Source: Isurus oxyrinchus (lineage: Eukaryota). From it: a stretch of DNA of 64,000 bases. Location: assembly GCA_026770705.1 (NCBI GenBank), contig JANJGN010000006.1, forward strand, positions 147,250,001 through 147,314,000. Reading direction: 5' to 3'. Of this stretch, positions 2,393 through 58,950 are shown in pieces (within the stretch, counting starts at the first letter, position 1; the number at the start of each line of letters is the position of its first letter). The notes beneath the pieces are model-generated. The model ran no database searches and was not told the origin of the DNA. It was given only the letters and a program-made list of their open reading frames with translations. The translations under genes and the position numbers were made by a program.

Positions 2393-2636
2393 TTTTTTAA
2401 AATTTGTTCATTGGATGTGGGCATCGCTGGCTGGGCCAACATTTATTGCCCATCCCTAACTGCCCTTGTTCAGAGGGCATTTAAGAGTCAACCACATTGC
2501 TGTGGGCCTGGAGTCATATGTGGGCCTGACCAGATAAGGACAGCAGATTTCACTCCCTAAAGGACGTTAGTGAACCAGATGAGATTTTATGACAATCAGC
2601 ACTGGTTTCAAGGTCATCATTAGACATTTAATTCCT
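2393..2636 (-). mobile_element. SINE (LINE-A-related core + LINE-A tail), head missing
   Basis: Minus strand has core ...gcaatgtggttgactcttaaatgccctctgaa joined directly to caagggcagttagggatgggcaataaatg. Confidence 0.8.
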
Positions 2637-9090: not shown

Positions 9091-9889
9091 CAGAAAGCTC
9101 CTGGAAGAATTAATCCGCCAATGGTTGCTTTTGTGCTGTTAAGGCTGAAATTGGTTGACAAACACTAACAATTAAACACTGCCACATTGATTTCCCTATC
9201 TTTTTTGGCACCAGATCTCTTGAGGGTTGCAGACAGCAGGATTGAAGCTAAACCACATCTTTTGTTCTTGCTGGTGGTGAGCTTGGTGATGGCAAGGGCA
9301 TTTAATTTGACAAGGTGGTGGCGTATCTAAATCCCCGCTGCCTTTCCATTTCTACCAGAATTGAGTTCTGGCGGGAAGGCCCATGGTCAACCTTCCCACC
9401 CCGCTGCCAATTGAGGTCCTTAAGTAGCTAATTAATGACCACATAAGGGCCTATTATTATCCTAGTTGTAAGCAGGCCTGTTGCCATGTGGCATCCATGA
9501 CAGGTGAAATTGTGGGCCGCTTGTCACCTTGAGGGGCCCACAATCAAAGGCAATCAGAGCCTGATGGACGGATGGAACATCAAGAAGCGCCACTGAGAAC
9601 CGTCCCCTGCCCTTGTTTCTGACCTCCCTGCCCCCCTCTCCCTGCAACCCCCATCCTGCAACACCCAACCCATCACCCCCCGTCCCCCACAACTGTATGT
9701 TGTATATTCAATAGGTTTTATGGCGAGGTTTTTAGTCTAGTCTGGTTAAACATTAAGTCTTTATTAATAATTATTTATTAATATATAACTATGTACACAT
9801 GTACAGGATACAGTTCAAACTTGGAGCTTAACTCAATGCTTGCATCTACACAAGTTGGAGGGACAAGGTGGGAGCAGATCATTCATTGC

Positions 9890-12691
9890 GGGGAAGGCGA
9901 TGGCATAGTGGTATTGTTGCTGGACAAGTAATCCAGAGACCTAAGGTAATGCTCAGGGGACCTGGGTTTGAATCTCGCCATTGCAGACGGTAAAATTTGA
10001 ATTCAATAAAAATCTGGAATTAAAGGTCTATTGATGACATTGTTGATTGTTGGTTCGTTAATGCCTTTAGGGAAGGAAACCTAGCACCCTTACCTGGTCT
10101 GGCCTGTATATGACTCCAGATGTGGCTGTGTGACTCCACAATGTGGTTGACTTTTAAATGCCCTCTGAAATGGCCAAGCAAGCAACTCAGTTATATCAAA
10201 CTGCTACAGAAAAGGAATAAAACCGGATGGACCACCTGGCATCTACATAGGCACCGGAAACAACAATGGCAATCTCAGCCCTGTTAGCCCTGCAAAGACC
10301 TCCTCTACTGGGTTTCTCATGTCCTACCAGCAGAACAGACCCAGGGATGGTGACAGTGGTGTCCTGGGCATTGCCTGTAAAGTATGATTCCGTGTTGCTT
10401 GATTAGTCTGGGGGCTAGTGCCAAAATTGGGAGAGCTGCCTCATAGACTGCAGCAGAGGTGGGGGCACAGTGATACACAGTCAGGAGGGAGTTGCCCTGG
10501 GAGTCCTCAGCATCGACACTGGACCACTTGGAGTCTCATGGCATCAGGTCAAAAATGGGGAAGGAAACCTCCTGCTGATTACCACGGACCTCCCTTCCTC
10601 AGCTGATGAATCAGTGCTCCTCCATGTTGAAAGCACTGAGGGTGGCAAGGGTGCAAATGCACAATTGTGGGGGGGGGGGGGGGGTGCAGTGGATTCAATG
10701 TCCATCTGGAAGGGTAGCTCAGTAGCACCACTACTGACCGAGCTGACTGAGTCCTAAATGACCTAGCTGGTAGACTGGGTCTGCGGCAGGTGGTGAGGGA
10801 AAAACATACTTGACCTTATCGTCACCAACCTGCCTGCCACAGGTGCATCTGTCCATGACAGTATCGGTAGAAGTAACCACCGCACAGTCATTGTGAATAC
10901 CTTCCAGCTTCACATTGAGGATAGACTCCAACGTGTGGTGTGGCACTACCACCGTACTAAATGGGACAGATTTTGAAAATATCTAGCAACTCAATACTGG
11001 GTATCCATGAGGCGCTGTGGGCCATCAGCATTGTACAAGAACACACTCTGTAGCTCATGGCCTGGCATATCCCCACTCTATAGATGCCAGTCTTCAGCAA
11101 ATTCGATTCACTCCACACAATAACAAGAAGTGGCTGAAGGCAATGGGTAGTGCAAAAACTATGGGCCCTGACAATATTCTGGCAATAGTACTGAAGACTT
11201 GTGCTCCAGAACTTGCCATGCCCCTAGCCAAGTATTGCAACACAGCTACAAGACTCTCATCTACCCAACAATTGCCCAGGTATGTCCTGTACATAAAAAG
11301 CAGGACAAATCCAATCTGGCCAATTACCAGCCCATCAGTCTACTCTCAATCATCATTAAAGTAATGGAAGGGGTCATCAACAGTGCTATCAAATGGCATT
11401 AGCTTAGCAACAACCTGCTTACTGACACGCAGTTTGTGTTCCAACAGGGCCATTCAGCTCCTGACCTCATTACAACCTTGGTTCAAATATGGATAAAAGA
11501 GCTGAACCCCAGAGGTGAGGTGAGAGTGACTGCCCTTGACATCAAGGCAGCATTTGACCGAGTGTGGCATTAAGGAGCCCTAGCAAAACTGGAGTCAATG
11601 GGAATCAGGGGGAAAACTCTCTGCTGTTTGAAGTCAAACCTAGCACAGGGGAAGGGTGTTGTGGCTGTTTGAGGTCAGTCATCTCAGCTCTACGACATCA
11701 CTGCAGGGGCTCATCAGTGTAGAGTTCTTGGCCCAACCATCTTCAGCTACTTTGTCAATGCCCTTCCTTCCATCATAAGGTCAGAAGTGGGGATGTTCGC
11801 TGATGATTGCACAATGTTCATCTCCATTCGCAACTTCTCAGATACTGAAGCAGCCCATGACTAAATGCAGCAAGACCTGGACAATATCCAGGCTTGGGCT
11901 GACAAGTGGCAAGTAACATTCGCACCATGCAATTGCCAGACAATGACCATCTCCAGCAAGAGAGAATCTAATCATTGCCCCTTGACATTCAATGACATTA
12001 CCATCATTGAATCCCCCACTATCAACATCTTGGGGGTTGCCATTGACCAGAAACTGAACTGGACTAGCCATATAAATACTATGGCTACAAGAGCAGGTCA
12101 GAGACTAGGAATCCTGCAACAAATAACTCACCTCCTGACTCCCCAAAATCCTGTCCACCATCTACAAGGTACAAGTCAGGAGTGTGATGGAATAGTCCCC
12201 ACTTACCTGGATGTGTGCAATTCCTACAACACTCAAGAAGCTTGACACCATCCAGGACAAAGCAGCCCGCTTGATTGGCATCATATCCACAAACATTCAC
12301 TGCCTCTGACACTGACACACAGTAGCAGCAGTGTGTACCATCTACAAGTTGCACTGCATGAATTCACCAAGGCTCCTTAGACAGCACCTTCCAAGCCCAC
12401 AACCACTACCACCAAGGACAAGGGCAGCAGATATATGGGAACATCAACAGCTAGAAGTCCGCCTCCATGTCATTCACCATCCTGACTTGGAAATATATCG
12501 CTGATCCTTCACTGTTGCTGGGTCAAAATCCTGGAACACCTTCCCTAACAGCACTGTGGGTGTACCTACACCACATGGACTGCAGCAGTTCAAGAAGGCA
12601 GCTCACTACCACATTCTCAAGGGCAACTAGGAATGGGCAATAAATGCTGGCCCAGCCAGCGAAGCCCACATCCCATGACTGAATTAAAAAA
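9890..12691 (+). mobile_element. LINE-A: tRNA-headed APE-RT non-LTR retrotransposon (decayed, internal deletions)
   Basis: A box tggcatagtgg 9901-9911 and B-box-like gggtttgaatc 9964-9974. APE start GLVPKLGEL at ~10412. RT fragments GPDNI..IVLKTCAPEL, NYQPISLLS, LDIKAAFDRVW, FADDC. Tail ends catcccatgactgaattaaaaa. Confidence 0.85.
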
Positions 12692-13890
12692 CACATGTCT
12701 CTGTCCAGTCCACAACTCTCACTAGACTCTGGTCATGTGACTCTTTACATCATACTGTGGGCGCTGCTGTTCTGAGTCGCACATTAACCCTTGCTATGCC
12801 AGATATCTTTATACTACACCTCCCCTATGTCTTTACCCAATGTATTCACAATACAATCATGTTTACCCAACATACTTAAATTACTATTATTCTGCCCCTT
12901 CTTCCTCCCTCAGGTCTCTTTCTTTACAGATTCAGGTGGTCTGTAGGCTTGACAACTCTTCTAGATCTTGTTCTGCTAATATTTGGAGGGCTGGTAGACT
13001 CTGTTGCTTTGGTTAAACCTTGTTGGTTCAGAGGTTAAATCATAAGTTTTCTTTCTGGCACTTGGTTGCCTTCTTCTAACTCTTTCTTTTCCGCTCCTTG
13101 AAGTTTAACCACTCCTTGTCAACTCTCCATCTGGCTTATCTTGTTCCTTTCGGAGAGAATGTATTGTCTGTTTGTTCTTAGTGTGAACCCGGTGTTTCTT
13201 TTGGCGTGTGTTCCACCGTGATCCTTGTGGGGGTCGAAGGTTTCTCCCCCCATCATGTAGTTGCGCCTTATCAATAGGCTCACCTTGCAGTTTGGACTTT
13301 TCCAAGGCATCATTCTCTTTGGTGTGCTTCCATGCCTCAGTGAGGTGTGCTGTGGCACATTGATAGTTGCTACCTTGTTCCATCAGCGTCCATGTTGTTG
13401 GATGCATTGGCTGGGGGTTGCAGCATCTGTGCTTGGTGTTTAGCGTTATTGTGATAGCAACATTTAGAGCCTGAGGTTGGGGTTCATCTTGCTGCTGCTG
13501 ATCATTCTCTTGATCGTCTTCCACTCGAGGCACCATGCTAACTATCTGCATGGTTGGCTGGTCTGACCAACTGCCTCCTGCAAAGAAACTGGATAAACCA
13601 GCTCTGCGAAGATTGAAGACAATTCAGAACTGAAGTCGCAGTCGAGAGTATCCTTATTGTTGGGCCTCCTGGGAAGTTACAGTTCTGTGTAATTAACGAA
13701 AGAGGTTATTTTGATGTCTTCTGCTATTTTAAAGAGGTTAAGGGCAACCCAAGCATCTCTGCTCAGAAGAGAACAAGATTGGTTACAAATGACGTGCATG
13801 ACTGAAAATATGTGCTTGTCCCAAATCTTAATGGTTCCAGGTTCATGCCATAACTGGAAGTCAGATTTATCCAGGCCCATACAGTGGTGT

Positions 13891-18092: not shown

Positions 18093-18497
18093 AGGGGAGA
18101 TAGTGGCATGGTGATAACGCCCATCTGTGAACTAGTGATCCAGAGGCCCATGCTAATGCTCTGGTGATATGTGTTCAGATTCCACCATAGAAGCTGGTAA
18201 AATTTGAATTTAATTAATAAATCTGGAATACAAAGCTAGTCTTAGTAATAGTGACCATGACAGTTGTCATAGATTGTTGTAAAAACCCAGTTGATTTACT
18301 AATGCCCTTTTGGGAAGGAAAACTGCCATCCTTACCTGGTCTGGCCTATACCTGACTTCAAACCCACAGCAATGTGGTTGACTCTTAACTGCCCTCTGAA
18401 ATGACCCAGCAAGTCACTTAGCTCAAGGGTAGTTAGAGAGAGACAACAGATGCTGCCCTTGCCAGTGATGCCTATATCCCTGAAAGAATTTTTTAAA
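18093..18497 (+). mobile_element. Full-length tRNA-headed SINE with LINE-A head, core and tail
   Basis: Head ggggagatagtggcatggtg; core ccttacctggtctggcct...gccctctgaaatg; junction ...cacttagct|caaggg...; tail ...atcccctgaaagaat. Confidence 0.8.
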
Positions 18498-20149: not shown

Positions 20150-21100
20150 ATGTTAGGAGAGCACAAAGTGTTCCTCCTGCTCTGTGTGGGAAGCCGGGAA
20201 CATTTCCAGTGCCCGGGGCCAGCATATGTGTGGGAAGAGTCTCCAGCTGCAGCTCCTGGAAGCCCGGGTTTCTGAGCTGCAGCTGCAGCTGTGGCTGTGG
20301 ACACTGTGGAGCATCCACGAGGCGGAGAGTATCGTGGATAGCATATATAGAGAGGTAGTCACACCGCAGGCTAACAGTCCAAAGGCAGGAAGGGAATGGG
20401 TGACCACCAGGCAGAGCAAGAGGACTTGGCAGGCAGTGCAGGAACCTCCTGTGGCTATTCCGCTGCAAAACAGACATATCGCTTTGGACACTGTTAGGGG
20501 GAATGGCCTCGCAGGGGAAAGCAGCAACAGCCAAATTCATTGCACTGTGGTTGGCTGTGCTGCACAGGGGAGGAGTAAAAATTGCTGGAATGCAATAGTT
20601 ATAGGGGATTCAATTGTAAGGGGAATAGATAGGTGTTTCTGTGGCTGCACATGAGACTCCAGGATGTTACGTTGCCTCCCTGGTGCTAGGGTCAAGGATG
20701 TCTCAGAGTGGTTACTGGTCATTCTGAAGGGGTCGGGTGAACAGCCAGTGGTTATGCTACACATTGCTACAAACGACATAGGTAAAAAAAAAAGGATGAG
20801 GTCCTAAAAGCAGAATATAGGGAGTTAGGAGGTAAGTTGAAAAGCCAGACCTCAAAGGTAGTGATCTCAGGATTACTACCAGTGCCACGTGCCAGTCAGA
20901 ATAGGAATAACAGGGTATATCGGATGAATTTGTGACTGAATAGATGGTGTGAGGGGGAGGGTTTCAGATTCCTGGGACATTGGGACCGGCTCTGGGGGAG
21001 GTGGGACCAGTACACACTGGACAGGTTACATCTAGGCAGGACCGGGACTGACGTCCTCGGGGGAATATTTGCTAGAGTGGTTGGGGAGGGTTTAAACTAA
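20150..21100 (+). pseudogene. CR1 ORF1: Zn-finger/leucine zipper + SGNH esterase
   Basis: CGKSLQLQLLEARVSEL; IVIGDSIVRG; CLPGARVKDV; D.LHL. Contains stops and frameshifts. Confidence 0.85.
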
Positions 21101-21101
21101 A

Positions 21102-24100
21102 ATGGCAGGGTGATTGGAACCTATGCAAGGAATCAGAGGAAGGGGAATCAAGGACAAAACAAAAGACAGAAAGGGAAATAAGAAAAGTGATAGGCAGAGA
21201 AATCAAGAGCAAAAATCAAACAGGTCCTCAGTGAAAAATAGTAGGAACGGGACAAGTAATGTTAAAAAGATAAGCCTTAAGGCTTTGTGCCTTAACACAA
21301 GGAGCATTTACAATAAAGTGGATGAATTAACTGCGCAAACAGATGTAAACAGGTATGATATAGTCAGGATTACAGAGACATGGCTGCAGGGATGGGAACT
21401 GAATGTCCAGGGGTATTCAGTATTTAGGAAGGACAGACAAAAATGAAAATATGGTGGAGTTGCATTGCTAGTTAAAGAGGAAATTAACACAATAGTGAGG
21501 AAAGATATCAACTCTGAAGATGTGGAGCCTGTATGGGTAGAGCTGAGAAACAGTAAGGGTCAAAAAATGTTAATGGAGGTTGTATATTGGCCCCCAAACT
21601 GTTGTGTTGATGTTAGGAATGGCATTAAACATGAAATTAGAGATGCATGCAATTAAGGAACATCTGTAATTATGGGTGACATTAACATGCATAAAGATTG
21701 GACAAATCAAATTAGTAACAATACATTAGGGGAGGAATTCCTAGACTGTATATGGGATGGTTTTCTGGACCAACACGTTGTGGAACCAAAGAGAGAACAG
21801 GCCATCCTAGACTGGGTATTGTGTAATGAGAAAGGAATAATTGGCAATCTAGTTGTGCGAGGCCCCTTGGGAATGAGCGACCACAATATGATAGAATTCT
21901 TCATCAGGATGGAGTGTGACATAGTTGATTCTGAGACTAGGGTCCTGAATCTTAATAAAGGAAACTACGATGGTATGAGACGCGAGTTGGCTATGATGGA
22001 TTGGGACACGTTACTTAAAGGGATGATGGCGGATAGGCAATGGCAAACATGCAAAAGCGTATGGGTGAACTGCAACAATTCTTTATTCCTGTCTGGTGCA
22101 AAAGTAAAACAGGAAAGCTGGCTAAGCCATGGCTTATTTGGGAAGTTAGAGATAGTATTAGATGCAAGGAAGAGGCATACAAATTGGCCAGAAAAAACAA
22201 CAGACCTGAGGATTTGGAGCACTTTAGAATTCAGCAAAAGAGGACCAAGGGATTGATTAAGAAGAGGAAAATAGAGTACAAGAGTAAGATTACAGAGAAC
22301 ATAAAAACTGACTGGAAAAGTTTCTATAGATATGTAAAGAGAAAAAGATTGGTGAAGATAAATGTAGGTCCCTTACAGTCAGAAACAGGGATATTTATAA
22401 TGGGGCACAAAGAAATGGCTGACCAACTAAATACATACTTTGGTTCTATCTTCACAAAGGAGGACACAAATAACACACCAGAAATGTTGGGGAACAGAGT
22501 TTAGTGAGATGGAGGAACTGAAAGAAATCAGTATTAGTAGGGAAATGGTATTGGAGGAATTGATGGGATTGAAGGCCGACAAATCCCCAGGGCCTGATAA
22601 TCTACATCCCAGAGTACTTAAGAAAGTGGCCCTAGAAATAGTGGATGCATTGGTGGTCATCTTCCAAGATTCTATAGACTCTGGAACAGTTACTACAGAT
22701 TGGAGGATAGCTAATTTAACCCCACTATTTAAAAAGGGAGGTAGAGAGAAAACAGGGAATTATAGACCAGTCAGCCTGACGTCGGTAGTGGGGAAAATTC
22801 TAGAGTCCATTATAAAAGATTTAATAGCTGAGCACTTGGAAAATAGTGGCAGAATCAGACAGAGTCAGCATGGATTTACAAAAGGGAAATCATGCTTGAC
22901 AAATCAACTGGAATTTTTCGAGAATGTAACTAGTAGAGTTGATGAGGGGCAGCCAGTGGGTGTGGTTTATTTGCACTTTCAGAAGGCTTTCGACAAAGTC
23001 CCACATAAGAGGTTGGCGTGTAAAATTAAGCACATGGGATTGGGGGTAGTGTATTGAGATGAGTAGAAAACTGGTTGGCAGACAGGAAACAAAGAATAAA
23101 CCGGTCTTTTTCTGAATGGCAGGCAGCGATTAGTGGGGTACCGCAGGGATCCGTTCTATTCACAATATATATTAATAATTTAGAAGAGGAAACTAAATGT
23201 AATATCTCCAAATTTGCAGATGACACAAAGCTGGGTGGGAGGGTGAGCTGTGAGGAGGATGCAGAGATGCTTCAGTGTGATTTGGACAAGCTGATTGAGT
23301 GGGCAAATGCATGGCAGATGCAATATAATGTGGATAAATGTGAGGTTATCCACTTTGGTAACAAAAACAGGAAGGCAGAATATTATCTGAATGGCTATAA
23401 ATTGAGAGAGGGGAATGTGCAACAAGACCTGGGTGTCCTTGTACACCAATCACTGAAGGTAAGCATGCAGGTGCAGCAGGCGGTAAAGAAGGCAAATGGT
23501 ATGTTGGCCTTCATAGTGAGAGGATTCGAGTACAGGAGCAGGGATGTCTTGCTGCAATTGTACAGGGCCTTGGTGAGACCGCACCTGGAATATTGTGTGC
23601 AGTTTTGGTCTCCTTATCTGAGGAGGGGTGTTCTTGCTTTGAAGGAGTACAGAGAAGGTTTACCAGACTGATTCCTGGGATGGCGGGACTTCTTCTTCTT
23701 ATCGTGTCCACGGACAGTCTATACATGGCCCAGCTAGAACTGGACACATTTTTGCACCTTGTTGTTGATTTCAGCAAGATCTGCAACAGTGCAGGGTTCC
23801 TCTAGCGATAGACATTGCAGGAGATGTTGCATGGTCTGTGGCTCAGTTCCACATTCACAAGTTGTCGGGTTGGTTGTATATCCCCATTTGCTTAGTGACA
23901 CGTTTGAATGACCTACACCAGTCCTAAGTCTATTAAGGCACTTCCAGGTTGCCCAGTTGCAATTAGCTCCTGGGGGAAGGCTTTCATCTGGTAGAATTTC
24001 CATCGCTGGGGGTTGTTCGAGACTGGCGAGCCGGTCTTTCCACAAGGCGATGTGGGTTTCAGATGGGGCTGATTGTAATGGAACAACACTGTTCATGAAG

Positions 24101-26334: not shown

Positions 26335-27510
26335 TTTCTTTTAGTTCATTCATGGGATGTGGGCTTTGCTGGTTGGGCCAGCATTTATTGCCCATCCCTT
26401 GTTGCCCTTGAGAAGGTGGTGGTGAGCTGCCTTCTTGAACTGCTTCAGTCCCTGTGGTGTAGGTACACCCACAGTGCTGTTAGGAAGGGGGTTCCAGGAT
26501 TTTGACCCAGCGACAGCGAAGGAACGGCGATATATTTCCAAGTCAGGATGGTCTGTGACTTCGAGGGGAAATTCCAGGAGGCAGTATTCCCATCTATCTG
26601 CTGCCCTTGTCCTTCTAAATGTTAGTGGATGTGGGTTTAGAAGGTGCTGCCTGAGGAACCTTGGTGAATTCTTGCAGTACATATTGTAGATGGTACAAAC
26701 TGCTGCCACTGTTCGTTGTTGGTGGAGGGAGTGAATGTTTGTGGATAGGGTGCCAATTAATCAGGCTGCTTTGTCCTGGATGGTGTCAAGCTTCTTGAGT
26801 GTTGTGGGAGCTGCACTCATCCAGGCAAGTGGGGTGTATTCCATCACACTCCTGACTTGTGCCTTATAGATGGTGGACAGGCTTTGGGGAGTCAGGAGGT
26901 GAGTTACTCATCACAGGATCCCTAGCCACTGACCTGCTCTTTTAGCCACCGTATTTATATAGCTAGTCCAGTTCAGTTTCTCGTCAATGGTAACCACCAG
27001 GATGTTGGGATGTAGTGGAGGACTCAGTGATGGTAATACCATTCAATGTCAAGGGGCAATGGTTAGATTGTCTTTTGTTGGAGATGGTCATTACCTGGCA
27101 TTTGTGCTGTGCGAATATTACTTGCCTCTTATCAGCCCAAATCTGGATATTGTCCATGTCTTGCTGCATTTGGACATGGACTGCTTCAGTACCTGAATAG
27201 TGCAGAACATTGTGCAATCATCAGCGAACATCCCCACTTCTGACCTTATGATGGAAGGAAGGTCATTGATGAAGCAGCTGAAGATGGTTGGGCTAAGGAC
27301 ACTACCCTGAGGAACTCCTGCAGTGATGTTCTGAGCTGAGATGACTGCCCTCCAACAACCACAACCACCTTCCTTTGTTCTCGGCATGACTCCAACCAGT
27401 GGAGAGTTTTCCCCCTGATTCCCATTGACTCCAGTTCTGATAGTGCTCCTTGAAGCCACACTCGGTCAAAATGCGGCCTTGATGTCAACGGCAGTCACTC
27501 TCACCTCGCC
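26335..27510 (-). mobile_element. LINE-A, 5'-truncated (RT C-half + tail)
   Basis: GVPQGSVLSPTIFSCFINDLP..MFADDC on the minus strand, and the family tail. Confidence 0.9.
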
Positions 27511-27519
27511 TCGGGATAT

Positions 27520-42049: not shown

Positions 42050-43554
42050 TTTTTTTATTCATTCATGAGATCTGGGTGTTGCTGGCTGGGCCAGCATCTA
42101 TAGATCATTCCTAATTGCCCTTAAGAAGGTGGTGGTGAGCTGCCTGCTTGAACCGCTGCAGCCCATGTGGTGTAGGAACACCCACAGTGCTGTTAGAGAG
42201 GGAGTTCCAGGATTTTGACCCAGTGACGGTGAAGGAACAGTAATATATTTCCTAGTCAAGATGGTGGGTAGCTTGGAGGGGAACTTCCAGGTGGTGGTGT
42301 TCCCATCTATCTGCTGCCCTTGTCCTTCTAGATGGTAGTGGTCATGGGTTTGGAAGGTGCTGTCTAAGAAGCCTTGGTGAATTCCTGCAGTGCATCTTGT
42401 AGGTGGTACACACTGTTGCTACTGTGCATCAGTGGTGGAGGGAGTGACTGTTTGTGGATGGGGTGCCAATCAAGCGGGCTGCTTTGTCCTAGATGGTGTC
42501 AAGCTTCTTGGGGGTTGTTGAAGCTGCACTCATCCAGCCAATGCTGATAGAGCGGGATTCAGCAACGTTAACGCCATTGAATGCCAAGGAGTAATGGTTA
42601 GATTCTCTTTTGTTGTAAATAATCATTGCCTGGCATTTCTGTGGTATTTGAGCTTTAGGACTCAGCCAGCTCAGTCAGTAGTAGTGCTACTGTGCCACTC
42701 TTGGTGATGGACATTGAAGTCCCCCGCCTATGGTACATTCTGCACCCTTGCCACCCTCAGCGCTTCCACCAAGTGGCGTTCAATATGGAAGAGTACTGAT
42801 TCATCAGCTGAGGGGAGGGATGGGAGGGGTTGTGGGGTTGGGGGGTTGGGGATACGTGGTAATCAGCAGGAGGTTTCCTTGCCCATGTTTGACCTGATGC
42901 TATGAGATTTCACGGGGTCTGGAGTCGATGTTGAGGACTCCCTGGCAACTCTCTCCTGCAGTATACCACTGTGCCACCACCTCTGCTGGGTCTGTCTTGC
43001 CGGTGTGAATTTACTTAACCAGTGGTGGTGATGGTGGTGTCTGGGACATGATCTGCAAGGTATGATTTCGTGAGCTGTTGCGTGGCTAGTCTGTGAGGCA
43101 GCTCTCTCAATTTTGGCACAAACCCCCAAATGTTAGAAAGGAGGACCTTGCAGGGCCAACAGGGCTGAGTTTGCCATTGCCGATGTCCAGGTCAATGGTG
43201 GGTGGTCCTTCTGGTTTCATTCCTTTTATTCCATTTATAGGTTTTCTAGCAGTTTTATACAACTTAGTGGCTTGCTAGGCCATTTAAGAGTCAACCACAT
43301 CTGGAGACATATGTAGGTAAAGACAGCAGATTTCCTTCTCGAACAGTCATTAGTGAACCGGATGAGGTTTTTTTTTAAACAACAATGGCCTCTTGGCCAT
43401 CATTAGACTTTTAATTAAGATTTTTATTTATTGAATTCAAATTCCACCATCTGCCATGGAGTGACTCGATCTCCAGTCCACAAAAGCATTACTTGTGTCT
43501 CTGAATTACTGGTCCAGTGACAATACTGCTACACATTTCATCACCGTCTCCCCC
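42050..43554 (-). mobile_element. LINE-A, internally deleted, retaining tRNA head, core, APE start and 3' tail
   Basis: Head at 43554-43430, core 43400-43260, APE N-terminus 43140-42660, RT end and tail 42650-42050. Confidence 0.85.
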
Positions 43555-56629: not shown

Positions 56630-58950
56630 GAAGCAGGAACAAGGTGAGCCTATTGATAATTTGTTAATGAGATTGAAGGTTGCAGCCAGCAACTGTAAAT
56701 CCGAAGAGATGGGTGAAAGGCTGATAGATCAGCTCATCTGAGACTCTGCACAGCTTGGTATACAAAAAGCTCTGATTGGAAAAGACAAGATTACAATATC
56801 GCAGGCTGCAGACTCTGCCAGAGCACATGAAGCCACAACTCAGCAGATGAAGATGTTGAATACCCAATAAGTCAAAAGAAAGGTAGCAGGGTTGATGCAG
56901 TGAGACAGCAACAAAAGGATGCGCACCAGGTACAAGAGCTGTTGGGAACCACATAAGTTCACAGACAGAAGAAAATACATCACATACGGGTCAAACTTTG
57001 CAGCTTGTGGTAAGCTCAATCAGTAGGAAAAGATGCACTGAGCAGAGAAATAAGATCATAAAGAGCCTACCAGAAGCCGAGCAACTGGGAAAATGAGAAG
57101 AAAAAAAATATCAAAACATCCTTACCCTGGGAGGTGATGGTGTAGTGGTATTGCCTCCAGTAAACCAAGGGTAATGCTCTAGGAGTTCAAATCCCACCAT
57201 GGCAAATGGTGGAATTTGAATTCAATAAAAAAATCTGGAATGAAAATTTTCATCTGGTTCAGATGAAGGAAATCTTCTGTCTGGCCTACATGTGGCAATG
57301 TGGTTAGCTCTTAAATTCCCACTGATGGGCAATAAATGCTAGCCTAGCCAGTGATGCCCACATCCCATGAATGAATTCAAAGAAATGTCAATGACTCTGA
57401 GGATGCACTAGACTTAGGAACCATAAAACTGCATGAAATGTCTCAGAGAAAAGAAAATCACACAACCATTCAGATCAGGAGAGGGTGAGAAATAAACTGA
57501 CAACCATAAATCTGAAATGAAGATCACCACCAGAGCACAGAGTGAAAACACTCCCCTTCCCTCAAACTATACAGGGAGATCTTTCTCAAAAAGTTTAAGG
57601 AAGTAGTTACCCAAAGAAAGATGCTTTTAAAACAAGCAGATGGTAGCATCAGGTGGAACTGAACTGACATTCAATGACCCAAATCAGAGTGACACACAAG
57701 ACATTAACTGCACGTTCCAAGTCATGGAAAAAAAAGGTCCTGCTCTCCTGGGGTTGCAAAATGGATGGATATGCATTTGCTTGTACCCCAAAGATCTTAA
57801 CCAAATAATAAAGAGGAATCACAGCAACACTAGAAGAGATCATGCCAGCTCTTGCAGGGGCAAAAGTTTTCAATCAGTTTGGTGTCATAAATAGCTACTG
57901 GAACATGAATCTTGATGAGGAACCTTCCATGATGACAACACTCAACACACCCTTTGGATGGTCCAAATCCCTGCGTATACCTTTTGGCCTTAAAAGTGAG
58001 CCAAGATGTGATCAAGAGAAAAGTAGATGAGATATACAGGGGATGAAAAGAAACAGTCAGCAAAACTGATGATATCTAGACCTTTGGTTTAAATTAAAAA
58101 GATCATGACCATGATCTACATGAAGCCATGGAAAGAACAAGGAAAACTGGGATCAGGCTAAACACAGACAAATGCTTTGTGAAGGTAACAGAATGCCAGT
58201 TCTTTGGAATGGTGTACAAACATTATGGAATCAAACTGAGACCTGAAAAAGTCACTACCATCTCTGAGACAGGAGTTCCGAGAGACAAAAAAGAGCTGAG
58301 AAGTTGCTTTGTCTTGATCCAGTACATGAGTTCTTTCATACCTCACATATCAGAACACACAGCAAACCTACAAGAGCTGATGAAAAAAAAAATGTTGCAT
58401 ACCAGTGATCAGAGTCATATGAAAGGAGTTCCAGCAAACTCAAAAACAGTATTCAAGGAGACAAGTTTCATACCAGAACAAAAAGAAACCTGTCACCTGC
58501 AAGTAGAAGCTTTTGCAAAAGGACTGGGGCCACCCTTGGTTTAAGGAGGAAAGCAATTGGCATTCGCATCCAAAGTTTTAATATCAGCTGAGACCAGGTA
58601 TGCCAATATAGATACAGGGTTTTTGACAGTCAAGTATGGATGTGAGAAATTCCATAAATATCTCTATGGGAGAAAGTTCATAATGGAGAGTGATATTGTC
58701 CACTGGAACAGATCTGCAAGAAAAATCTGTGCAGGGTTCCATAAAGATTGCAGAAGTTATTCTTGAGGCTTCAGAAATACGATTTCACTCTAAAATACAA
58801 GCCAGGAAGAGAGATGTTGCTGACAGATGCCCTTTTTAATCTGTCACCACAGGAGAAACATGAGATAAAAGATCTAGGTGTAAAGGTCCACCACGTAATG
58901 AACATAACGCAACTAAAACTGAGTCAAATTGGAGATAAGAGCAGCAAAGG
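56630..58950 (+). pseudogene. pol: Ty3/Gypsy gag-pol remnant (RT, RNase H)
   Basis: EQGEPIDN; PKDLNQ; LAGAKVF..TTLNTPFG..IPFGL; GIRLNTDKC; AFASKVL.SAETRYANI..CEKFHKYLYGRKF; LQKYDFTLKYKPGREMLLTDAL. Confidence 0.85.
57129..57384 (+). mobile_element. Short tRNA-headed SINE (LINE-A head + tail)
   Basis: A box tggtgtagtgg, B box gagttcaaatcc, junction ...cccactga|tgggcaataaatgc, tail cccacatcccatgaatgaat. Confidence 0.8.

Follow-up and report, generated by a model that had tools for sequence, protein, structure and literature searches.

A Zenon-like LINE with a tRNA-like head, and short SINEs that share its ends, in a 64-kb window of Isurus oxyrinchus

We analysed a window of 64,000 nucleotides (nt) from Isurus oxyrinchus (GenBank assembly GCA_026770705.1, contig JANJGN010000006.1, positions 147,250,001 to 147,314,000). 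"The window" is this whole stretch. It is free of N, and all coordinates are counted from its first letter. It contains two copies of a long interspersed nuclear element (LINE) that start with a tRNA-like head. Copy 1 lies on the forward strand (9890-12691), and copy 2 lies on the reverse strand (43554-42050). The window also contains three short interspersed nuclear elements (SINEs), in each of which a 5' part is fused straight to the 3'-terminal 60-75 nt of the LINE. An earlier note, made from the letters alone, had described copy 1 as a head with an A box and a B-box-like motif, a core, a linker, AP-endonuclease (APE) and reverse transcriptase (RT) remnants, and a tail. All of these parts were recovered at the positions it gave.

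Parts of the headed copies and their shared junction

The order in copy 1 is head, core of about 200 nt, linker of about 110 nt, APE, RT and A-rich tail. The tRNA-like head covers 9890-9989. It contains an A box (9901-9911), a B-box-like motif (9965-9975) and a sub-threshold cloverleaf (9897-9985). The core (9990-10193) is common to the short SINEs, with homology to 18128-18421, 57156-57245 and 2577-2469. By BLASTN within the window, its shared part ends at about 10190-10193. Identity was 68% between 9921-10190 and 18128-18421 and 72.5% between 10051-10169 and 2577-2469. The linker (10194-10304) is LINE specific. It is absent from the SINEs and aligns to copy 2 at 43260-43139. The family tail (12617-12691) is again common to the SINEs. 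It contains the end of the open reading frame (ORF), AATAAA at 12639-12644 and an A-rich end.

The coding remnants of copy 1 were located by tblastn with P0016, a relative of 962 amino acids that carries Exo_endo_phos_2 and RVT_1 (Pfam). Residues 50-958 of P0016 span 10341-12618 (best E value, 2e-80). The APE remnants (10305-10975) gave a weak match (residues 50-257 on 10341-10952, 28% identity, E value of 8.8e-6), and the APE pieces alone had no Pfam match. The RT and C-terminal remnants (11172-12627, with a stop codon at 12628-12630) match residues 480-958, of which residues 480-798 fall on 11208-12140 at an E value of 2e-80. RVT_1 is weak at 11403-11570 and 11673-11861 (E values of 3e-4 and 2e-3, both below the Pfam cut-off).

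The APE and RT remnants named in the earlier note are real, with two qualifications. The alignment to P0016 indicates that about 0.4 kb is missing between APE and RT. The APE N terminus (10305-10450) is scrambled relative to copy 2. Its first and third blocks are exchanged in forward orientation, and its middle block (10354-10394) is inverted. The block-order matches are weak (E values of 0.06-0.9), and the translated motifs agree with them. The APE remnant also contains a run of 16 G at 10669-10684 that is not in copy 2.

Copy 2 was retrieved by BLASTN of copy 1 against the window. Its head-core-linker-APE order is identical to that of copy 1, as the earlier note had claimed for an antisense copy at 42050-43554. 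The tRNA-like head (43451-43554) is decayed. The core (to about 43261) and the linker (43260-43139) occupy 43139-43450, with the same junction as in copy 1. APE remnants are present at 42654-43138. RT C-terminal fragments and the tail (42050-42638) come after an internal deletion that removed about 1.2 kb between APE and the RT C terminus.

Identity between the two copies by BLASTN was 63% over head, core and linker (9911-10304 against 43526-43139), 90% over 41 nt at the APE start (10409-10449), 71% over APE 10451-10758, 78% over the RT C terminus and 85% over the tail. By direct alignment, the copies differ from the core ATG through the linker by indels of 12, 16 and 6 nt only. Conserved blocks flank the boundary between SINE-shared and LINE-specific sequence on both sides in each copy. 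Both copies are dead.

The 2 kb upstream of copy 1 had no match upstream of copy 2. The copies are separate insertions because these upstream flanks are unrelated. Neither copy is bounded by a target-site duplication of at least 6 nt. Both of the window copies that reach the APE N terminus contain head, core and linker, joined at the same points. No further family copy reaches it in the window, and no alternative 5' end was seen there. One 5'-truncated copy of the same LINE family extends from RT to tail on the reverse strand (26339-27515; BLASTN, 85% over 1189 columns).

SINEs of this family are very abundant, and BLASTN found five partial or whole SINE or tail fragments in the 64 kb. Unrelated SINEs could have inserted just upstream of 5'-truncated LINEs, or a single such accident could have been spread by segmental duplication. 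This explanation is hardly credible, because the junction is shared by both copies. The SINE part has no tail of its own in either copy and stops at the same base-level junction. The flanks are unrelated, and the copies differ by 15-37%. The shared junctions and unrelated flanks therefore point neither to a duplicated accident nor to two coincidences of a SINE beside a LINE. The two insertions also share the 5' terminus of the head-bearing SINEs, and the earlier judgment that chance nesting was unlikely stands.

Chimeras of the U6-L1 type likewise have an RNA of the RNA polymerase III (Pol III) type joined 5' of LINE sequence. Their junctions are variable and lie at random LINE truncation points, and they are not known to propagate. 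Copies 1 and 2 differ in that they share one junction, at the ORF start, and not a variable, insertion-specific one.

About 250-300 nt separate the 5' end (9890) from the APE frame. They leave no room for an ORF1, and the earlier report that none is visible was therefore correct. As in Zenon elements, ORF1 is absent here, and the flanks farther upstream are unrelated between the two copies. The accompanying premise that a CR1-group LINE should have an ORF1 was too strong, as ORF1-less Zenon, Rex1 and L2 clade B elements have been reported (PMC13343379).

The APE frame extends back through the whole linker in both copies. It contains one stop in each, compatible with CpG decay of arginine codons. 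No ATG in the APE frame was found within the linker of either copy. The linker of copy 2 holds a second ATG that is out of frame with APE. In copy 1, the APE frame is continuous with an ATG at 10141, the first ATG in that frame, which lies inside the SINE-shared core. Judged from these frames, the linker is probably an N-terminal extension of the APE-RT ORF. The start codon of the ORF probably lies inside the shared core, an assignment we make tentatively. Relative to copy 1, copy 2 has 16 extra nt with stop codons between core and linker (43225-43250, reverse strand).

Short SINEs and their breakpoints

The three short copies join core to tail at three different places. The first (18094-18497, forward strand) contains head, core and LINE tail, with a join from about 10193 to about 12617 in copy 1 coordinates. 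The second (57129-57381, forward strand) contains head, a shortened core and tail, joined from about 10167 to about 12634. The third (2393-2636, reverse strand) is 5' truncated and contains core and tail, joined from about 10169 to about 12618. All three are short and noncoding, as SINE2 elements are. The headed copies are not, at 2.8 kb and 1.5 kb with APE and RT remnants. The SINE at 18094-18497 retains about 24 nt that are present in both LINE copies and absent from the other two SINE types.

Contigs of four public runs were matched to the copy 1 locus at 80% likeness; one of these runs, X8, is from a second species. The joint from 10169 to 12624 was present in three contigs of X1 and one of X8. 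The joint from 10169 to 12628 was present in 11 contigs of X1 and two of X8. A joint from 10166 to 12635 was retrieved once from each of two RNA-type runs. The RNA-type runs gave contigs over all parts of the element; their RNA label is a guess, and contigs cannot show transcript starts.

The 5' terminus lies 9-11 nt upstream of the A box in all four head-bearing copies (two LINE and two SINE). It follows that long and short RNAs had one and the same start. The family RNA started with a tRNA-like A/B-box module of about 100 nt, followed by the core of about 200 nt, and the window SINEs are this same unit minus the sequence between the core and the last 60-75 nt.

On balance, the true full-length unit of the family is probably the headed form, from which the SINEs would derive by internal deletion. 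The SINEs would have arisen more than once from headed LINE RNA, by internal deletion or template jumping. The three joins and the extra 24 nt in the SINE at 18094 fit such repeated derivation from a headed long RNA. The earlier note had offered two readings, capture of a SINE head by the LINE or a coding ancestor of the SINE. The three SINE breakpoints and the matching contig joints fit the coding ancestor. Capture is kept as a rival.

In a secondary capture, a tRNA-headed SINE, possibly of Deu type, would have passed its head and core on to a LINE RNA in a single event of template switching or recombination. Headed LINEs would then form a side lineage, the masters would carry another 5' untranslated region (UTR), and the SINE would be the ancestor. 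We consider this unlikely. Head and core are 63% identical between the copies, against 71-85% for the LINE body plus tail, a difference that could reflect separate histories. In cartilaginous fishes, SINEs that combine a tRNA-like head with a conserved body are ancient and widespread (PMC5499810), and template switching is an accepted route for the exchange of SINE parts (PMC5786205). However, both 5'-complete copies in the window are headed, and no other 5' end accompanies them. Three breakpoints, and a SINE with extra LINE-only sequence, are also easier to obtain from a headed LINE.

Derivation from a headed LINE has a partial parallel in the Lepidoptera. Persaeus, a short internally deleted LINE derivative (SIDE), shares its 5' UTR and ORF start, and its ORF end, 3' UTR and poly(A), with a Zenon LINE (PMC6740152). 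The window SINEs and LINE have the same two-ended relation, and the SINEs at 18094-18497 and 57129-57381 share both ends with copies 1 and 2. If the ORF starts in the core, the SINEs keep its first and last codons, as in the Persaeus/Zenon pair. Persaeus is reported to lack homology to tRNA, 5S or 7SL and to lack a Pol III promoter, whereas the shared 5' end in the window has A and B boxes.

Bipartite LINE-derived SINEs (Bov-tA, RTE, Vingi) likewise have bodies made from 5' and 3' parts of the partner LINE (PMC5786205). In the bipartite model, a small-RNA head is added to a headless bipartite LINE. The autonomous LINE is headless, unlike copies 1 and 2. The Repbase survey in the same paper found SINE bodies with 5' parts from RTE and Vingi only and none from the CR1 group.

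In SacSINE1, a tRNA-like head is followed by a Deu domain and by a tail with homology to L2-2_CM (PMC5499810). The DeuSINE families include EbuSINE1, LmeSINE1 and SacSINE1 (PMC4824008). SacSINE1/DeuSINEs belong to sharks, chimaera and coelacanth, and copies have been reported in whale shark and skate (PMC5499810, PMC4824008). They resemble the window elements in having an A/B-box tRNA-like head and then a conserved body, in cartilaginous fishes. They differ in the tail. That of SacSINE1 measures about 160 bp and derives its homology from L2-2_CM, a LINE, whereas the window SINEs end in the final 60-75 nt of a LINE with poly(A). No coding partner with the same head is reported for SacSINE1 or the DeuSINEs. 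A 17-nt string from the core had no match in a search of paper texts. The core is a candidate Deu domain.

The head and the choice of polymerase

Copy 1 contains an exact A-box match, TGGCATAGTGG, at 9901-9911, close to the element start at 9890. The B-box-like motif, GGTTTGAATCT, at 9965-9975 agrees with 9 of 11 consensus positions, and both mismatches are C-to-T. Matching used the usual A-box and B-box consensus sequences. Together the boxes form a putative type-2 Pol III promoter of the kind found in the heads of SINE2 elements. The combined A-gap-B pattern occurred once in the window and in none of 100 dinucleotide shuffles; the pattern was composed after the site had been seen. The A box alone is common, with 35 window matches at no more than one mismatch against 29 expected. 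The only other exact match in the window (42966-42976, reverse strand) lies within the APE coding sequence of copy 2. The A-box motif alone is therefore not diagnostic.

The earlier note had called the head tRNA derived. The A/B-box arrangement is indeed nonrandom, but tRNA homology was not significant by Rfam, ARAGORN or folding. ARAGORN at 80% thresholds gave a Thr(AGT) cloverleaf with a long extra arm, in the same register in copies 1 and 2. The fold of the copy 1 head had a z-score of -0.9, and the consensus fold of the four head sequences was weak. A tRNA origin of the head is only weakly supported, by the A/B boxes and a sub-threshold cloverleaf. The head is best termed tRNA-like and promoter-like.

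The head may be a type-2 Pol III promoter, located internally, that sets the 5' end common to all copies. The main argument for Pol III is the shared 5' terminus, which lies at the distance from the A box expected of type-2 promoters. That distance is well established. A promoter role is likely for the short derivatives. For the coding RNA of 3.3 kb, transcription by Pol III may be roughly as likely as transcription by RNA polymerase II (Pol II). In a stronger version, Pol III transcribes the autonomous LINE itself from the head. The resulting RNA, about 3.3 kb long and uncapped, would be polyadenylated via AATAAA and translated from the core ATG. A conserved SINE body, possibly the Deu domain, would then stem from the shared head and core. 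We hold this stronger version to be doubtful.

Both copies and the SINEs have A-rich ends. Behind 12673 and 12678, the consensus of the loose contig ends consists of about 16-18 consecutive A. The long RNA might instead be made by Pol II, from signals of its own or by read-through from a host gene. The head would be a relic or an RNase P/Z-type processing signal for 5' trimming, a role comparable to that of the self-cleaving ribozymes with which R2 and RTE LINEs begin. We think this quite improbable. An AATAAA plus poly(A) end is typical of Pol II mRNAs, runs of four T are not significantly depleted, and a Pol III unit exceeding 3 kb would be out of the ordinary. There is a precedent in LINE RNAs that are processed by ribozymes and uncapped (PMC5786205, citing Ruminski 2011). 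However, the 5' terminus lies 9-11 nt upstream of the A box, as type-2 Pol III initiation predicts, and the cloverleaf needed by RNase P is weak in these copies. The Pol III transcripts of AATAAA-bearing SINEs can be polyadenylated. SINEs of this kind are named as Pol III transcripts in PMC12101331. An AATAAA plus poly(A) end does not decide between Pol II and Pol III.

The earlier note had proposed depletion of TTTT terminators as a check on Pol III. The counts are within dinucleotide expectation in both copies, and depletion was rejected as Pol III evidence. On the sense strand, copy 2 has a single run of four T where shuffles average 2.14, and as low a count was seen in about a third of them. 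The T at position 10152 completes such a run in copy 1. It is C in the other four aligned window copies.

Several results weigh against a headed full-length unit with a tRNA-like Pol III promoter. Two copies were examined, and both are old and broken. Their heads and cores are less alike (63%) than their tails (85%). None of the 32 contig pieces listed at 80% likeness crosses 10190. The 16-nt indel in copy 2 puts the core ATG out of the APE frame. Copy 1 has two sense-strand runs of four T where shuffles average 3.33, and 32% of them had two or fewer. With default settings, ARAGORN called no tRNA anywhere in the window; at 80% thresholds its calls there numbered 27, and shuffled windows averaged 24.45. 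Relaxed ARAGORN was rejected as tRNA evidence, its calls being as frequent in shuffled sequence. Rfam found no tRNA at an E value of 10 or less over 9800-12800, and on the head alone it gave tRNA-Sec at 11.8 bits (E value of 7.2). Minimum-free-energy folds were no better than shuffles for three of the four heads.

Family, spread and a neighbouring LINE

The best explanation of copies 1 and 2 is that they are retrotransposed members of a very abundant elasmobranch LINE family that is CR1-group and Zenon-like. We call the family Zenon-like because APE-RT is its single reading frame, ORF1 is lacking, and AATAAA and poly(A) mark its end. Zenon elements are reported from elasmobranchs, coelacanth and hagfish (PMC13343379). 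They are always ORF1-less, and their poly(A) tail is called unique among CR1-group elements. Like the family described here, they have a single APE-RT ORF and are abundant in sharks and rays. The likeness is one of structural features. According to the same paper, elasmobranch Zenon elements are not deposited in repeat databases, and CR1-group elements make up 22-34% of elasmobranch genomes.

A word search of the main text of that paper, supplements not covered, did not find "tRNA", "Pol III" or "promoter". A whale-shark preprint mentions CR1-Zenon-like LINEs only as a repeat class (bioRxiv 10.1101/443036). No LINE with a tRNA-like head was described in the literature searched by keyword, a search that did not cover Repbase, Dfam or supplements.

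SINE heads are taken as a mark of noncoding parasites, and LINEs are taken as Pol II units. A head-bearing coding CR1-group LINE would reverse, for one large family, the published order in which the head is added later (PMC5786205). A conserved SINE body would thereby gain a concrete origin. A testable question would also arise, whether a long retroelement RNA can be made by Pol III and translated without a cap. Given the CR1-group share of elasmobranch genomes, the family is also a large part of them. If the stronger version given above, with an autonomous Pol III LINE, were true, Zenon-type LINEs would have given rise by deletion to an entire SINE superfamily. The three vertebrate lineages reported to have Zenon (hagfish, coelacanth and elasmobranchs; PMC13343379) each hold a DeuSINE family (EbuSINE1, LmeSINE1 and SacSINE1; PMC4824008).

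Contigs matching the copy 1 locus numbered 469,420 of 46.4 million in X1 and 346,456 of 49.6 million in X8. The other two runs gave 12,993 and 25,366. Many contigs of at least 80% likeness were present in the bin 10235-10341, in the linker region. Coverage was far lower in the bins 9700-9806 and 12696-12900 than inside 9890-12691 in both species; these depth figures are rough. Runs of organism B contain 38-39% of the sampled words of the locus. Part of the locus, or a close relative, is therefore present in organism B too.

A phmmer search with the RT remnant gave 2523 matches at an E value of 1e-3 or less. The closest proteins were short elasmobranch proteins with 65-77% identity, and the long relatives were more distant. 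The former were short predictions from Rhincodon typus and Pristiophorus japonicus, together with a Pristis pectinata misannotation. The nearest long relatives were metagenome proteins or came from amphioxus. Protein-cluster names were tried for clade assignment and were uninformative. Homologous-protein searches with decayed pieces across the junction or APE gave no match. Scans of metagenomes, viruses and prokaryote genomes gave chance matches only, and BLASTN of both copies against 32 loci from these scans returned only the match to the 21-nt pattern itself.

Contigs of all four runs contain a back-joint of 56 nt (12575 to 12520; 12579 to 12524). This points to a variant of the family in which 56 nt close to the 3' end are duplicated in tandem. 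A coral metatranscriptome run (X20) holds 7% of the sampled words of 9700-12900. These words presumably come from fish or shark nucleic acid in the environmental sample or from a conserved part of the repeat.

A different LINE was found at 20184-23818 on the forward strand. It contains an upstream ORF of 156 amino acids (20184-20651), followed by APE-RT with RVT_1 matches. The upstream ORF had no Pfam match, including for an esterase-type ORF1. It contains an IGDS motif, which may be reminiscent of esterase-type ORF1s. A two-ORF CR1/L2-type LINE shares the window with the ORF1-less family.

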